Shown here in pieces: positions 43,720 through 59,972 of a stretch of DNA of 64,000 bases. The position numbers and the translations under genes are program-made. The notes beneath the pieces were generated by a model, which was given only the letters and a program-made list of their open reading frames with translations, was not told where the DNA came from and searched no databases. The stretch is from the sequence record MG592671.1. The stretch is one strand, 5' to 3'. Position 1 is the stretch's first letter. Every line of letters begins with the position of its first letter.

Positions 43720-43733
43720 ATGACTTGAATAAA

Positions 43734-43772
43734 TGCAATGCACCCTACATAATATGTTATAATAATATGTAG
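43734..43772 (+). promoter_or_regulatory. Phage promoter inside an inverted repeat
   Basis: TGCAATG-N14-TGTTATAAT; CTACATA/TATGTAG. Confidence 0.65.
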
Positions 43773-46364: not shown

Positions 46365-46453
46365 AGAGAGATGACTGAGTGGCTTAAGGTACTCGCTTGG
46401 AAAGCGAGAGGAGGCATAGCTTCCCGCAGGTTCGAATCCTGTTCTCTCTGCCA
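46365..46453 (+). tRNA. tRNA-Ser(GGA)
   Basis: Class II, loop TTGGAAA, G73-CCA. Confidence 0.93.
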
Positions 46454-46478
46454 ATATATTTTTAAACAAGGACTTAAT

Positions 46479-46724
46479 ATGTTCGTAGTAATTTTTGGTC
46501 AACCAGGTTGCCCATTCTGCACAAAAGCAGTAGATCTAGCTGAAAAATATAAAACAGAGCGCGATGATTTCAACTATCGTTATGTTGATATCAAAGCAGA
46601 AGGCATTAGCAAAGCTGATCTTTCAAAAACAGTAGGTGAAGAAGTGACCACAGTGCCACAAATCTTCATTGATCAAACACCAATTGGTGGTTACACGCAA
46701 TTTGAAGCATACAATTTAGACTAG
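46479..46724 (+). CDS. grxA: Glutaredoxin 1
   Basis: GQPGCPFC, TVPQIF, IGGY; start corrected to ATG46479. Confidence 0.93.
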   Translation: MFVVIFGQPGCPFCTKAVDLAEKYKTERDDFNYRYVDIKAEGISKADLSKTVGEEVTTVPQIFIDQTPIGGYTQFEAYNLD

Positions 46725-46738
46725 GAGTAAAACAGCAA

Positions 46739-47194
46739 GTGGAACACGTCATTACGTTCCTTCAGGATTACCTGTCCTGGATCATGAACGGTGTATCGAT
46801 GGTGGCAGCATATTGTCTTTCTAATCAGAGAGCAGTCGTTGGTCGATACTTAGGTGCAACAGGTGCATCTCTTTTTATATTATACGGCGTGGTGACAAAT
46901 CAGCCTGCTTTTGTGGTAGCTGATATCATCTTCCTGTACATTTACATTAGTGCAGTTTTGAAGTTCAATAAGAAACGAGATTCTTATCGTGAAAAAGCAG
47001 CGGATGATGAAGAAACTATTGCTCAAATGCGAAAGATCATCAAACGTGCTAATACAATTGAATTAGAAATTCTTGAAACACGTATTGGTAAGCAAACGAA
47101 AAAGAAACTTGAACTCCGTAAATCATTACAGAAGCAACTTTATATTCTGTTGAAGATTGGCGAAAAGATTGAAAATGACATCGAGGACGAGTAA
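46739..47194 (+). CDS. Membrane protein with a C-terminal coiled coil
   Basis: Three short TM segments; SD AGGAG. Confidence 0.65.
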   Translation: MEHVITFLQDYLSWIMNGVSMVAAYCLSNQRAVVGRYLGATGASLFILYGVVTNQPAFVVADIIFLYIYISAVLKFNKKRDSYREKAADDEETIAQMRKIIKRANTIELEILETRIGKQTKKKLELRKSLQKQLYILLKIGEKIENDIEDE

Positions 47195-47208
47195 AATCGT
47201 CCTTTTTT
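47184..47208 (+). terminator. Terminator
   Basis: AGGACGA-GTAAAA-TCGTCCTTTTTT. Confidence 0.75.
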
Positions 47209-47223
47209 GTGACTAAAATTTAT

Positions 47224-47342
47224 GGGCTCATGGCGAAGCGGGATCGCGATTTAGTTTAGTACCTAGATCTAGGAGTACGCATCCGCAACACTCTTAACCG
47301 GCATGATCGGTGACGTTGGTTCGAATCCAACTGAGTCCACTA
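47224..47342 (+). ncRNA. tRNA-like RNA with G3.U70/A73 and a replaced anticodon arm
   Basis: GGGCTCA/TGAGTCC-A-CTA, D-arm and T-arm present. Confidence 0.65.
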
Positions 47343-47349
47343 TTAACTT

Positions 47350-47568
47350 GTCGAGCTGGAAAACAAAGCCTCTGAAACTGTAAAGCCTCCACAAGGTTAA
47401 CAGATTGTAGAAGATTCGTTATACTAAGAGAATCAGGGGAGATAATGTTTGGTCAGAGTAACAAATAGATATGGAATATTAGAGGAAAAGCTAGTAGACA
47501 GTGGAACTACTTGCAGAACTCTTTTAAGACGTTGAAACTACGGGGTTCGATTCCTCGTCTCGGCACAA
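47350..47568 (+). ncRNA. 219-nt RNA with tRNA-like termini
   Basis: GTCGAG/CTCGGC-A-CAA; T-arm CGGGG-TTCGATT-CCTCG. Confidence 0.55.
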
Positions 47569-47572
47569 AAAA

Positions 47573-47664
47573 GGAATACAATCGAAAAAGGGCTTGTAGT
47601 AGGCACTGAGACCCAGAAGCCCTGAAATACCCATTCAGATCGTCTGTAAGCAGTGCTGTATTCC
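47573..47664 (+). ncRNA. 92-nt pseudoknotted RNA element
   Basis: GGAATACA/TGTATTCC, AGGGCTT/AAGCCCT, GCACTG/CAGTGC. Confidence 0.55.
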
Positions 47665-47674
47665 TATTAACTAT

Positions 47675-47969
47675 GCCCCTGATGTTCAATACTTGAATAA
47701 GGGAATCCCTGTAAGGCTGGAGTCACCCGGAGAGACAGATTACGATACTATATCACTCACTAATACACTGGATCCAGATCGCGTGTTCGTGACTGTGACG
47801 GTAGTATAGTACGTGTCGTAAAGAGATGATTCCTGTGATACGGTATAAGCTGGTGTAGAACTCGCTCGTGAAGGTAGACTGAAAGCGGACCAAGTGTGAC
47901 TACTTGGCAAAATCCAGGAGTATGTTGAGACTATGAGTTGGGTGGTTCGATTCCACGCCAGGGGCAACA
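47675..47969 (+). ncRNA. ~295-nt RNA with tRNA-like termini
   Basis: GCCCCTG/CAGGGGC-A, T-arm GTGG-TTCGATT-CCAC, internal helices. Confidence 0.65.
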
Positions 47970-48032
47970 ATTCAGGATAACGCAAACGCATTATCCTCAT
48001 TAATATGTGTTAATATAATACAACAACATTAT

Positions 48033-48103
48033 CCCCGTTCCCTAACGTGACACTACAGAAATAATAGAGTTGCTGGACGTTCGAATCGTCAAGCGGGGTC
48101 TAA
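48033..48103 (+). pseudogene. Degenerate tRNA-like element
   Basis: CCCCGTT/AGCGGGG and GACG-TTCGAAT-CGTC only. Confidence 0.45.
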
Positions 48104-48131
48104 TCATCCTTAATATCAAAGGTACTTCATA

Positions 48132-48869
48132 ATGGATAATATCCTTCTGTTCGCTGGACACAACACGTCAAAACGTGGCGGCATGGCCGATTTCGTTGCT
48201 GCATTTAGTTCTGTTTATGCAGCACAAAAGTTTATTGAAAACGAGAACACCCAACACACCCTGCTTGACACACTCCCAAGTTTACAGTGGGCACATTTGT
48301 ATAACACAAATGAAGGTCGTATTGTGCAGAAAGGCAAGATCGAGATCTGGGGTCGTGAAGATATTGGAAATGAAGATGATGAAGAGACTAAGTTCACATG
48401 GTCACCGTGTGATGATGAAAAGGATCTTCAACCTCTAATGGTTCAAGCAGCTAACGACAATAGTGCTCGTGAAAAGGCCGAAGAAGAACGTATTGCTAAA
48501 GAAGAAGCAAAACTTGCTGCTGAACAGGCTATTGAAGATTCGGTTGCTAATACTATCATTCGCGTAGTTCCCTTTGATCTAGGCGTTATTGACTCTGTAG
48601 TTGATGAAATTGAAGTTCAATTAGAGTTTGCATTTAATCTTGAAGCAATGAAGCAAGAAGGTGAAATCACCAATCGACACGTAAAAGTATTGACTATTTC
48701 ATTTTCAGATGAAGATAAAGCTCTACTTGAGAGTATGGGTGGTCCTAGTGCGCCAGGTCATTGGGTAAGTAAAGCTCAGCAGCATTTTGATGACGAAATG
48801 ATCATGGCATTTTTTGAAAACGAAGTTCTAACCGAGGACGAAGTTAGCTCAGTAGCAGAGGTAGCTTAA
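48132..48869 (+). CDS. Acidic hypothetical protein
   Basis: 245-aa ORF. Confidence 0.8.
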   Translation: MDNILLFAGHNTSKRGGMADFVAAFSSVYAAQKFIENENTQHTLLDTLPSLQWAHLYNTNEGRIVQKGKIEIWGREDIGNEDDEETKFTWSPCDDEKDLQPLMVQAANDNSAREKAEEERIAKEEAKLAAEQAIEDSVANTIIRVVPFDLGVIDSVVDEIEVQLEFAFNLEAMKQEGEITNRHVKVLTISFSDEDKALLESMGGPSAPGHWVSKAQQHFDDEMIMAFFENEVLTEDEVSSVAEVA

Positions 48870-49237
48870 TGGCTGACTTTACTTATGAAGATGCTATAGC
48901 ATCACCTGAGGGCACTACCTTTTGGGTATGTGCTCACTCTCGTAGGGATGTCACTAAGAAAGCACAGCGTTATCAAGAACCACAGCAAGCAGTTGTGGTA
49001 AGTGACGGTGCAGTAATTCGTGGATCGAATTTTCTTGTCCTTCTTAATAACAAGGGCAATATGACCAAGAAGAAAGTCATTCGCACATCTACTTATATCT
49101 ATGATGATAAGGATGAGTGTGCAGCTAGATTCAATGCGTTAAGTATTGAGATTCGAGATCGCTATATGGATTACTCTCGATACGTGGCAGAACAAGCTAC
49201 AGCGCTGAGCAAGCTAATTGACAAATACAGCAAATAA
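48869..49237 (+). CDS. hypothetical protein
   Basis: TAATG coupling. Confidence 0.75.
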   Translation: MADFTYEDAIASPEGTTFWVCAHSRRDVTKKAQRYQEPQQAVVVSDGAVIRGSNFLVLLNNKGNMTKKKVIRTSTYIYDDKDECAARFNALSIEIRDRYMDYSRYVAEQATALSKLIDKYSK

Positions 49238-49460
49238 CGGGATATACTGAAAAGGGCATCTCCGAAGCTATCATCCTAGGAAATGTGGCGATCATTGTTG
49301 TCGGTTATTAGGTATATTCAAGTCTACTCCGAAAGCACGGGCTGACGCGGGAGCGTTGGGCGAAGTAGAGGTTCAATTCCTCTAGCACACTTGATAACAA
49401 ATCGGGAGAGTGTGTTCTGGGTGAAATATTAGGGTGCGAGTCCCTTAAGTAGACGCCCGT
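49237..49460 (+). ncRNA. 224-nt structured RNA with a permuted tRNA-like domain
   Basis: T-arm followed by GCACACT/AGTGTGT hairpin; closed by GTCTACT/AGTAGAC and ACGGG/CCCGT. Confidence 0.6.
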
Positions 49461-49485
49461 AATTAACTACATGGAAGGATCAAAT

Positions 49486-49938: not shown

Positions 49939-50853
49939 CTAATGTTTTATCCCTAGTTTTTCAAGTAACACCTGTTTGACATTATCATCGTATCTAATAC
50001 GTAATATATTTCCGAGTTCTTCAGCTTTGGCAGTTTTCACTGTATCTCGATGTTGAGCTCTATTAAATCCATCTGTATCTTTATGAAAGATTGGGACAAA
50101 TTCATAGTGCTGTTTGCCATCATACTCAACAAATAGATTATAATCAGGCAGATAGAAATCATAGTAATACTTACAATCAACATCGTTAACTCTGTATTGC
50201 TGAATATAAGTAATATTATTATCATCTAAGATCTTTTTAGTTTCAAGCTCACCTTTAGAAGTTCTACAATTAGGACAGCCTGATTTCATACTTATATGGG
50301 CACTGCCTTGTTGATAAAAAATTCCATGTTTAGAGCAAATAATAGGATGTCTATCATCATATGCGCTATAATCAATCAGTGAATAATCATACAAATCACC
50401 ATGAACATCTTTAGCTTTTTGAATAAATTCTTCTTGTGTTAGAGTATTTGATTTATTTCTTGATAGTTGCCCACAGACTTGACAACTGTGTTTGCCGTTG
50501 ATGAGATTATCAGGAGTCATTTCGAATTCTCCATGTTCAGAGCAGATTATCACAACTTTTGTGTGGGCTCCTTTATATACAACCTTACTAAGATCATATT
50601 TTTCACCATGAATCTTTTTGAAGTTCTCTATAAATTGTTCTTGCGTGATACTATTATTAGGTATAAAACAATCAGGACAGGAACCAGTTCTAGCACCTAA
50701 ATGATTTCTAGCCATACAAGAAAATTCTCCATGATCTGGGCATATTATAGTTACGGCACTTTGTCTGTTTTTGAAATTTTCTATTAACGAGTAATCAAAT
50801 CTATCGCCAAATTTACTTTTGGCTTTATTGATGAACTTTTCTAAATTAGTCAT
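49939..50853 (-). mobile_element. Free-standing homing endonuclease (CPxHGEF repeats plus DUF559-like domain)
   Basis: Three ICxxHGxF...CxxC repeats; YDFYL, VEYDGKQHY; antisense insertion. Confidence 0.8.
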
Positions 50854-50899: not shown

Positions 50900-51736
50900 G
50901 TGGGCAGCTGGTATGAAACTGACTTTCTTACAAATCTACCTATTCAAGACGATGATGAAGTGATGGTGTTCTTCTTAGAGCAACAACATGGATTAGTTCC
51001 TACAAGTTCTATAACTTATTCACATGATATATATCGACCTATAGGTATTCCTATTCAAGGGTGGTATGACGATTACGGTCGTTATAAACTTAATGAGGGT
51101 GATATAGTATATGATCATATGCTAGAACATCTACGTTCAAAAGTTATGCCTATGGAAGAAGGTTCTAATAGATATCACGAAAAAGCAGTAATCCCAGAAA
51201 CTATGACATGGGAAAACGTTTTCGAGAATATCCATGAAGAACGGCTAAAGACTCACTCGCACTACAACGGTTCTAAGAATCACATTGTTGAAGTAGCAAT
51301 TCATAGAAGCATTTATGATATGATGTCAGAAGAATGCACTACTTGGAAAGGCACTCAAACTTGGAACGATGAATACCAAGATCTAAAGGCCAAAATAGCT
51401 AAAGCTCGTGAAGATATTGATAACGGAACTCCTGAGAGAATTGCTAGTGCTATTATGCGAATGGAAATAGGAGAAATCCTAGGCAGGTTCGCACCATTTG
51501 ATAGTGTTTCTTTCAAAGACATGTATTATGCAGCAGTTGATGATGGGCAAGAAGATCATTATCTAAGAGCACTTGCTAAAATGAAAGTATTCAATACAAA
51601 CTTATCCATGTTGCGTAAATCTTGGATGCCACAAGCTGGCACAGGATCACAGGATGCTGAATTTGAATTACACATAAAACTAAATGGTGTAGTAACAATG
51701 TTTGCTCATAATAAGAAGAGGAGTTACGATGAATAA
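50900..51736 (+). CDS. hypothetical protein
   Basis: GTG start; SD AAGGAG. Confidence 0.75.
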   Translation: MGSWYETDFLTNLPIQDDDEVMVFFLEQQHGLVPTSSITYSHDIYRPIGIPIQGWYDDYGRYKLNEGDIVYDHMLEHLRSKVMPMEEGSNRYHEKAVIPETMTWENVFENIHEERLKTHSHYNGSKNHIVEVAIHRSIYDMMSEECTTWKGTQTWNDEYQDLKAKIAKAREDIDNGTPERIASAIMRMEIGEILGRFAPFDSVSFKDMYYAAVDDGQEDHYLRALAKMKVFNTNLSMLRKSWMPQAGTGSQDAEFELHIKLNGVVTMFAHNKKRSYDE

Positions 51737-52540: not shown

Positions 52541-52763
52541 TGAATACTTTGAATACCTGCATGATCTACAAAAGCAGGGATATATGATATACGATAATTC
52601 TCGTATGGTTCAGGACTTTATCTCAATTGAAAAAATTGATGGAGTATGGAGGTATTTTTATCACGAAGACACTGAAGGTGAAATAGACTGTGATATGGAT
52701 GGATGCTTTACTGTATACAAGGATGTCACTGCTGAAGTAAAGCAATCAACTACAATGTTATAA
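52530..52763 (+). CDS. hypothetical protein
   Basis: ORF. Confidence 0.6.
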   Translation: MTNDEYFEYLHDLQKQGYMIYDNSRMVQDFISIEKIDGVWRYFYHEDTEGEIDCDMDGCFTVYKDVTAEVKQSTTML

Positions 52764-52797
52764 TATAGTAATAATAAAATATTAGTAGAGAAATATT

Positions 52798-55067: not shown

Positions 55068-55431
55068 TAGAGATTCACTTAGGAGTACTCTTAATGAGTA
55101 CTTCAGACTCTGTAATTCCTGTGAACAAGCAGGTATTGACATTGATGATGTCCATAATGACATTACAAAAACAGTCACTCAAGAAGGTGGTCCACAGAAG
55201 CTAGAAGATTTTCTAGTGAATACTGTTTGCTGTCCTAGCTGTGAAGGCGAGGCTGGCGAGAGTGTTGCTGATGGACACGACTGTTGGGGAAAAACAGAGT
55301 TCAGTTTTATCCCTTGTTTCAAATGTGACGGTAAAGGCTTTTTACCAGCTGATTATAAAGAACAAGAGAAGAACGAACGACGTAAAATGTACATACAGCT
55401 TCGTGAAGAATTTGGACACGAAGATATTTAA
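55054..55431 (+). CDS. Protein with a DnaJ-type CxxCxG zinc finger
   Basis: CPSCEG, CFKCDGKG. Confidence 0.7.
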   Translation: MNQNSRDSLRSTLNEYFRLCNSCEQAGIDIDDVHNDITKTVTQEGGPQKLEDFLVNTVCCPSCEGEAGESVADGHDCWGKTEFSFIPCFKCDGKGFLPADYKEQEKNERRKMYIQLREEFGHEDI

Positions 55432-55464
55432 TGTAATAAAGTCATAAAAATATGTTATAACATA
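55432..55464 (+). promoter_or_regulatory. Phage promoter variant, palindromic
   Basis: TGTAATA-N14-TGTTATAAC; TATGTTATAACATA palindrome. Confidence 0.6.
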
Positions 55465-58500: not shown

Positions 58501-58577
58501 AAAAAGATTTTGCTGAATTGTTTATAGGGTTTGTTTTAGTTATGTTCGCTATAGCTATATTGCTTGAAGTTACGTAA
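58497..58577 (+). CDS. 26-aa membrane microprotein
   Basis: ATGA coupling; single TM. Confidence 0.5.
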   Translation: MKKDFAELFIGFVLVMFAIAILLEVT

Positions 58578-58647
58578 TGTTACGCAATCGTAATAAAATG
58601 TTATAATAATACATAAGCAGTTAGCAACAAGAGCTGCTTAGTAAATT
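58578..58647 (+). promoter_or_regulatory. Promoter plus 5' leader hairpin (duplicated at 59775-59828)
   Basis: TGTTACG-N14-TGTTATAAT; ATAAGCAGTTAGCAAC. Confidence 0.7.
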
Positions 58648-59534: not shown

Positions 59535-59787
59535 AACTATTGGTGCTTTAGTTGAACTACACGATGATGTATTTGACTTAGAGGGCTATAAAGATTATTA
59601 TACACACCTTGTTCATTTGCGTGGTGTGGTATTTGAAGTTCAAAATTGTGATGGCGCGCATACGCACGTTATTGATAGAAATAGTGGCGTAGAATTTGGC
59701 CTACATTCAGAGAATTTCAAAACTATTTCAAAAGAAAAGAAAAAAGCTTACGATAAAGCACAACGCTTCGTAAATAAAATGTTATAA
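59515..59787 (+). CDS. hypothetical protein
   Basis: ORF. Confidence 0.65.
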   Translation: MMTQAHKTIGALVELHDDVFDLEGYKDYYTHLVHLRGVVFEVQNCDGAHTHVIDRNSGVEFGLHSENFKTISKEKKKAYDKAQRFVNKML

Positions 59788-59828
59788 TTAATTATAAGCA
59801 GTTAGCAACGTAGACTGCTTGATAAATT

Positions 59829-59916: not shown

Positions 59917-59972
59917 CAAACTGTTGTCATATAAAATGTTATAATAACTATATACTAATATAGGGATTTATA

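Follow-up and report, generated by a model that had tools for sequence, protein, structure and literature searches.

The tRNA region of the Vibrio phage 2.275.O._10N.286.54.E11 has several non-coding stretches, and one of them contains a 92-nt piece of DNA that can form several stems and sits between two RNAs resembling tRNAs at their ends. The question raised by this locus is whether the element is an RNA with an activity of its own, such as self-cleavage or ligand binding, or whether it belongs to the processing of the RNAs on either side of it. All positions given here are those of the window, i.e., the whole stretch of 64,000 nucleotides of sequence record MG592671.1 that was analyzed, which matches the 348,911-bp phage genome with 100% identity (blastn); record coordinates are obtained by adding 124,000 to window coordinates.

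The Locus and Its Surroundings

The element (47573-47664) lies inside a 937-nt non-coding gap (47195-48131), bordered on one side by the gene of a small membrane protein and on the other by a gene similar to T4 Y07C. This gap is one of the non-coding stretches mentioned above, and its sole annotation is a single "tRNA-OTHER" (47224-47339); ARAGORN finds 11 tRNAs in the window. Inspection by eye reveals in the gap several RNAs that combine tRNA-type ends with oversized interiors, here termed RNA1, RNA2 and RNA3, along with a short fourth one (Table 1). The preliminary description of this DNA had placed the element between two tRNA-like RNAs, and this placement holds: acceptor and T-arm features are present in the sequence, and RNA-library contigs end at 47566 and 47674. 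The spacer between RNA2 and RNA3 consists of the element plus two tails, the 5' one A-rich and 5-6 nt long, the 3' one AU-rich and 8-9 nt long. At the upstream border of the gap, a promoter-like site overlaps the terminator hairpin of the upstream gene.

Two further features of the window are recorded here. A motif recurring around AAAATGTTATAAT upstream of genes and tRNAs (43732-43767, 52746-52781, 55430-55460, 58576-58611, 59757-59792 and 59927-59962) is probably the extended -10 promoter consensus of the phage. In addition, the DUF723 gene (49939-50853, minus strand) carries three direct repeats about 200 nt apart (50318-50748), as would be expected if the protein contained tandem zinc-ribbon-like repeats.

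Table 1. Positions of the features discussed in the text (window coordinates unless a contig is named)
Feature	Position	Strand	Description
Promoter-like site	47169..47197	+	TTGAAA, 17 nt, TAAAAT; for the ~920-nt transcript
AGGA...TCCT hairpin	47184-47203		terminator of the upstream gene
RNA1, tRNA-like	47224-47339		found by eye
RNA2, upstream tRNA-like	47349..47566	+	acceptor-like stem TGTCGAG/CTCGGCA; T-arm 47543-47559; no CCA encoded
Spacer RNA2/RNA3	47567..47673	+	107 nt; element plus tails
Copies of AAAGGAATACAA	47570-47581; L019:1989-2000; L020:189-200		ribosome-binding stretch before ATG in relatives (metagenomic phages)
AGGA...TCCT hairpin	47572-47665		6 nt past RNA2
Closing stem, 5' arm	47573-47580	+	GGAATACA; 9-nt form AGGAATACA at 47572..47580
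S1, 5' arm	47589-47595	+	AGGGCTT
S2, 5' arm	47603-47608	+	GCACTG; within the S1 loop
S1, 3' arm	47617-47623	+	AAGCCCT; 7 bp with the 5' arm
CUGAA/UUCAG hairpin	47622..47638	+	CTGAA 47622-47626, TTCAG 47634-47638; 7-nt loop
S2, 3' arm	47651-47656	+	CAGTGC; 6 bp; directly abuts the 3' arm of the closing stem
Closing stem, 3' arm	47657-47664	+	TGTATTCC; 9-nt form TGTATTCCT at 47657..47665
RNA3, downstream tRNA-like	47674..47966	+	acceptor-like stem TGCCCCTG/CAGGGGCA; T-arm 47941-47957
AGGA...TCCT hairpin	47974..47997	+	8 nt past the RNA3 3' end; position matches that of the element after RNA2
Short fourth tRNA-like RNA	near 48033-48100		found by eye

Folding of the Element

The preliminary description listed four complementarities, namely the closing stem, S1, S2 and the CTGAA hairpin, and all of them are found in the sequence. 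The closing stem comprises 8 bp, or 9 bp when A47572/T47665 is counted. The strands of the other two stems follow the order S1-5', S2-5', S1-3', S2-3', which is that of a possible H-type pseudoknot, and in nested folding S1 and S2 are mutually exclusive. As for the CTGAA hairpin, its complementarity stands and its presence alongside a full S1 does not, since C47622 and T47623 belong to both the 3' arm of S1 and the CTGAA arm, which makes the complete S1 and the complete hairpin incompatible.

The nested ensemble strongly favors the closing stem, S2 and the CUGAA hairpin (P about 0.98-0.99) and leaves S1 with P = 0.01, a preference obtained in each context that was folded, i.e., the 107-nt spacer, RNA2-spacer-RNA3, and the whole 920-nt transcript. 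In all of these contexts the pairing probability of the closing stem is mostly 0.9-1.0, dropping to about 0.5 at its innermost pair, while S2 pairs with P = 0.98 and the CUGAA hairpin with P = 0.8-0.99, the last pair being the one at 0.8. Since S2 stacks directly on the closing stem, RNAfold joins them and the CUGAA hairpin into one long irregular hairpin of -23.4 kcal/mol, from which S1 is omitted. The closing-stem domain is retained in both the minimum-free-energy and the centroid structures of the 937-nt gap, and in these models the element folds as a self-contained domain. When growing 5' pieces were folded, S1 was the earliest stem, and it was displaced when the 3' arm emerged.

The stability of the pseudoknot was estimated with a rough pseudoknot-aware score, adopted after a simple two-layer score had proven uninformative, in which a candidate helix is masked, the remainder is refolded, and the duplex energy plus 3 kcal/mol is added. 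By this score the closing stem, S1 and S2 together reach -23.8 kcal/mol, versus -23.4 kcal/mol for the nested fold, and a penalty of 5 kcal/mol suffices to put the nested fold ahead. The pseudoknot is thus modeled as about as stable as the nested hairpin and is not clearly favored; the pseudoknot of the preliminary description is retained as regards complementarity and strand order. The element resembles H-type pseudoknots in its strand order and in loop lengths (7, 8, and 27 nt) that are sterically allowed; it differs from them in having an equally stable nested alternative, in the competition of S1 with the CUGAA hairpin, and in that the coexistence of its helices is putative.

Chance Expectation

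Compared with dinucleotide shuffles, the 92-nt element folds with z-scores of -1.85 on the plus strand and -2.16 on the minus strand; the 107-nt spacer gives -2.4, and the pseudoknot-aware score gives -2.0. The fold is moderately better than that of the shuffles, and its significance is weak. The stem topology was counted over both strands as a closing stem of at least 8 bp, an inner stem of at least 7 bp and a loop-to-tail pairing of at least 6 bp within a span of no more than 120 nt. This triple occurs at three loci in the real window and at a mean of 1.7 per shuffled 64-kb window, with at least one occurrence in 14 of 30 dinucleotide shuffles. The pseudoknot taken alone is what chance provides in a 64-kb scan; its position between two tRNA-like RNAs is not chance.

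The Gap in RNA Libraries

The region is present in eight small RNA-library runs from two studies, and a small part of it also occurs in a sand metagenome. Four runs were aligned to positions 46400-48400 by means of Logan contigs, which report presence and are not proof of RNA ends, strand or abundance. In run X1, a single contig covers 47203-48122, starting 6 nt past the promoter-like site and stopping 10 nt short of the ATG of the next gene, and there is no depth over 48142-48400; coverage in this run is uneven, which argues for RNA and against DNA carry-over. The contig of run X5 (47408-47966) crosses the spacer and ends at the predicted 3' end of RNA3, and runs X2-X4 contain nearly all of the sampled words of a 931-nt query (shares 0.96-1.00). 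These data suggest that the gap is a single non-coding transcription unit of ~920 nt (47203-48122) with four tRNA-like modules.

Run X6 presents a different picture. Its contigs cover 47224-47331, 47394-47566 and 47674-47947, with word depths of 150-234 that are not a local measure, and none lies on 47567-47673. The contig ends at 47566 and 47674 coincide with the predicted acceptor-stem boundaries. Library selection alone may explain why the spacer is missing from this run.

A side observation concerns the X6 contig that ends at 47566, which bears three extra letters that do not come from the genome. They may be an added CCA, a reading prompted by the fact that RNA2 encodes none.

A Probable Spacer in a tRNA-Type Precursor

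We consider it fairly probable that the element forms the folded center of a 107-nt spacer (47567-47673) peculiar to this lineage, in a ~920-nt precursor, and that it is removed by nucleases. The spacer lies on the same strand as, and between, two RNAs with tRNA-type ends, and it is co-transcribed with both of them as judged by the X1 and X5 contigs, which are not raw reads. Most likely, then, it is an ordinary feature: a real hairpin in an interesting neighborhood.

In the mechanism that we propose on the basis of general tRNA biology, the ~920-nt precursor would carry several tRNA-like RNAs and be cut at the boundaries of their acceptor stems. RNase P would cut at 47673/47674 to create the 5' end of RNA3, and the 3' end of RNA2 at 47566 would arise either from a cut of the RNase Z/BN type or from RNase E followed by exonuclease trimming. 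As RNA2 encodes no CCA, this would be added after the 3' cut, and the released spacer would be degraded. The closing stem, with its 9 bp stacked on the 6-bp GCACUG/CAGUGC helix, may prevent the spacer from mispairing with the neighboring tRNA-like domains, and would leave the A/U-rich tails at the two cleavage sites short and single-stranded. S1 would form earliest during transcription and then be either displaced or retained as a marginal pseudoknot. Catalysis by the RNA itself would play no part, for the mature ends are those expected from RNase P and tRNA 3' processing, which makes self-cleavage unnecessary. When the element was first described, the choice was left between a ribozyme and a processing element; the contig ends at the acceptor boundaries speak for the second, and the first is taken up below.

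Several tRNAs of phage T4 also lack an encoded CCA and depend on endonucleolytic cleavage at the 3' side and on CCA being added. The spacer shares with those of polycistronic tRNA precursors in bacteria and T4-like phages its co-transcribed position between tRNA-type acceptor and T-arm ends, its absence from one RNA run that covers both neighbors, the short A/U-rich single strands flanking the element, and an upstream RNA with no encoded CCA. Unlike them, it is long (107 nt) and elaborately folded, its processing enzymes are putative, and neither of the RNAs that flank it (218 and 293 nt) is a true tRNA.

Another regularity concerns the outermost base pairs. Perfect AGGA...TCCT-closed stems of at least 7 bp occur five times in the window, versus 1.1 +/- 0.95 in shuffles, and three of the five are in the gap, each placed just past a 3' end, namely that of the upstream ORF, of RNA2, and of RNA3. 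This suggests a recurring 3'-trailer hairpin, on three cases noticed post hoc.

Relatives, Copies, and a Possible Leader Remnant

The element occurs only once in the phage genome, and on this ground a MITE-like element was ruled out. Blastn of the element against 50,697 GenBank phage records returned no match other than Vibrio phage 2.275.O, tblastn with both flanking genes gave no close relatives, and nothing was found in IMG/VR with the two flanking proteins. DNA patterns, both exact and gapped, representing the spacer and the conserved ends of RNA2 and RNA3, detected no homologue in IMG/VR (four patterns), JGI metagenomes or GTDB genomes. Conservation, to which the preliminary description had tied its proposal, thus fails to appear in any collection searched, and with no homologue found there is no sign of selection on the structure of the spacer.

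One gapped pattern matched eight IMG/VR contigs, which were judged chance matches: they form two unrelated groups, one with an intergenic hairpin and the other resembling a coding stretch, and they have neither the downstream CAGTGC nor the closing stem. Six of the contigs matched by chance (L010-L013, L016 and L017) are near-identical viral sequences with a conserved hairpin between two genes, made of GCATAG, AAAA, AGGGCTTTA, a 19-nt loop, TAAAGCCCT and CTATGC.

Relatives of the flanking genes with 45-75% identity were found on Logan/ENA contigs (L018-L023). Those contigs that extend to the equivalent position carry short gaps there, or a promoter and a protein gene, and no RNA array, which indicates that the array is specific to the lineage of Vibrio phage 2.275.O. 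On the metagenomic ENA contig L019, a non-coding gap of 450 nt (1548-2001) lies between a Y07C-like gene and a homologue of the window ORF 50900-51736; it has T-arm-like hairpins near 1875-1895 and 1930-1950 and resembles a counterpart of the tRNA-like RNA at 49237-49470 of the window. The sand metagenome (X9) contributes a 164-nt contig matching a portion of RNA3 (47815-47978) with 98% identity, at a depth too low for the spacer, and a fragment of the upstream gene with 84% identity; together these indicate that a close relative of the phage exists in the environment.

These comparisons bear on a second explanation, which we regard as rather unlikely: that the spacer is fossil sequence, for instance what remains of an mRNA leader or of a ribosome-binding site left between inserted tRNA-like modules, with stems that arose by chance and have no selected role. 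The three-stem arrangement is indeed at the chance level (1.7 per shuffled window), the fold z-score is only about -2, and the absence of the array next to relatives of both flanking genes makes the region a recent, lineage-specific build-up. Moreover, the 12-mer AAAGGAATACAA at the 5' end of the spacer recurs without a mismatch immediately ahead of the ATG of two genes in relatives, and some of the spacer may thus be left over from an mRNA leader. However, the shared stretch is short (E about 0.1 in a 25-kb set), the closing stem has 9 bp and delimits a domain that is autonomous in every folding context, and the AGGA-closed hairpins are enriched and placed past 3' ends. Within the spacer, no start codon follows AAAGGAATACAA at a usable distance, and neither strand has a coding signal, as there are only small ORFs with no support (PHROGs match with E = 0.31).

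An Improbable Alternative: A Stable Excised RNA

It is quite improbable, in our estimate, that the 107-nt spacer outlasts processing as a stable, structured RNA and performs a role of its own. Its terminal 9-bp stem and short tails would slow exonucleases, the X1 and X5 contigs span it, and X2-X4 hold nearly the whole query (0.96-1.00 of the sampled words). On the other hand, X6 has nothing on the spacer while both neighbors are covered, and our searches found no conservation, paralogue or known family.

A precedent for such an RNA is the E. coli 3'ETS-leuZ, a tRNA-precursor spacer that acts as a small-RNA sponge. In both cases an RNA left over from tRNA-type processing could persist; the phage spacer differs in having no known target, conservation or sign of accumulation. 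There is little probability that the excised spacer is a functional RNA in the sense of either a new class of pseudoknotted self-cleaving or ligand-binding fold, or a stable by-product acting in trans during infection. Were it catalytic or stable, it would represent a new class of RNA associated with the processing of phage tRNAs, and nothing in our analysis points there.

Ribozymes, Riboswitches and Terminators

The preliminary description had proposed a new self-cleaving ribozyme or a ligand-binding pseudoknot, noting that HDV-like ribozymes are known next to phage tRNAs. This background is borne out for the theta ribozymes, HDV-like RNAs located no more than 5 nt from phage tRNAs (PMC10879173). 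The covariance-model search that had been suggested was run with cmscan against all 4227 Rfam families, applied to the window at the gathering threshold, to 4.1 kb at E up to 10, and to a 156-nt slice with permissive filters, also at E up to 10. No relevant match was obtained, and in particular none to the ribozymes of the hammerhead, twister, twister-sister, pistol, hatchet and hairpin types or to riboswitches; on the 156-nt slice, the HDV-type models gave no match at E up to 10, and the three weak matches seen (E 0.74-9) were to unrelated RNAs, at chance level. The spacer was also considered as a tRNA or tRNA-like RNA itself and rejected, there being no T-arm beside the 3' arm of the closing stem and no match with ARAGORN or the Rfam tRNA model.

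A relaxed HDV-like descriptor was scanned over 47540-47700 on both strands and returned six partial layouts, none with P1.1 and none complete; such partial layouts occur in 3% of shuffles. In the partial layout, S1 serves as P1, CUG/CAG as P3 and a weak 4-bp helix as P2, L3 has 5 nt, and an A-U rather than a G.U pair stands at +1. A C can be placed at the first J4/2 position, where the catalytic C would stand, only in layouts that depart from the HDV-like fold elsewhere. The sole possible start of P1, at 47589/47590, is 23 nt past the 3' end of RNA2 at 47566. The element accordingly has neither the nested double pseudoknot of HDV-like ribozymes (P1, P1.1, P2 and P3, with or without P4) nor a putative cleavage site, at the 5' end of P1, within about 5 nt of a tRNA 3' end, as is the rule for theta ribozymes (PMC10879173). 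The preliminary description had remarked that the strand order does not fit HDV or hammerhead cores; the HDV layout is partial and without P1.1, and neither core gave an Rfam match at E up to 10.

With theta ribozymes (PMC10879173) the element shares a location just downstream of a tRNA-shaped phage RNA and a 7-bp helix with a 3-bp helix in its loop, followed by a downstream hairpin. It differs in the missing P1.1, the 5-nt L3, the lack of a G.U pair at the cleavage site, the weak 4-bp P2, the 23 nt between P1 and the tRNA-like 3' end, and the lack of a covariance-model match. A new self-cleaving ribozyme or aptamer is therefore highly improbable. It can draw on a pseudoknot topology that is sterically possible and about equal in stability to the nested fold, on a partial HDV-like layout (P1 = S1, P3, weak P2, C in J4/2) found in only 3% of shuffles, and on the adjacency of theta ribozymes to phage tRNAs (PMC10879173). 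Against it stand the structural departures just listed, the absence of any Rfam ribozyme or riboswitch match at E up to 10, pseudoknot statistics at chance level, contig ends that coincide with tRNA-type processing sites, and the fact that no relatives were found. The analysis lends no support to the ribozyme or new fold originally proposed.

An intrinsic terminator on the minus strand, with S1 and the closing stem followed by U5 and U6, has hardly any probability: that strand does read AAGCCCT followed by TTTTT and TGTATTCC followed by TTTTTT, folds slightly better (z -2.16) and has a weak Rfam look-alike of the stem-plus-U-tail kind (E = 0.74), but its loops of 21 and 76 nt are far above the usual size, the terminator scan made no call, the nearest upstream minus-strand gene (49939-50853) lies beyond three plus-strand genes, and the region is transcribed within the plus-strand RNA array, where the plus strand has no U run.

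Implications

Vibrio phage 2.275.O is a jumbo phage that is known to exchange the tRNA pool of its host for another late in infection (Yang et al. 2021, as cited in PMC12482277). Read as a spacer of a tRNA-type precursor, the element is in itself of little importance; what it does is delimit two unusual tRNA-shaped RNAs and point to the sites at which they are probably processed. Its value is that it helps to define a ~920-nt transcript and the parts of it, from which the larger tRNA-like RNAs of this phage can be studied.
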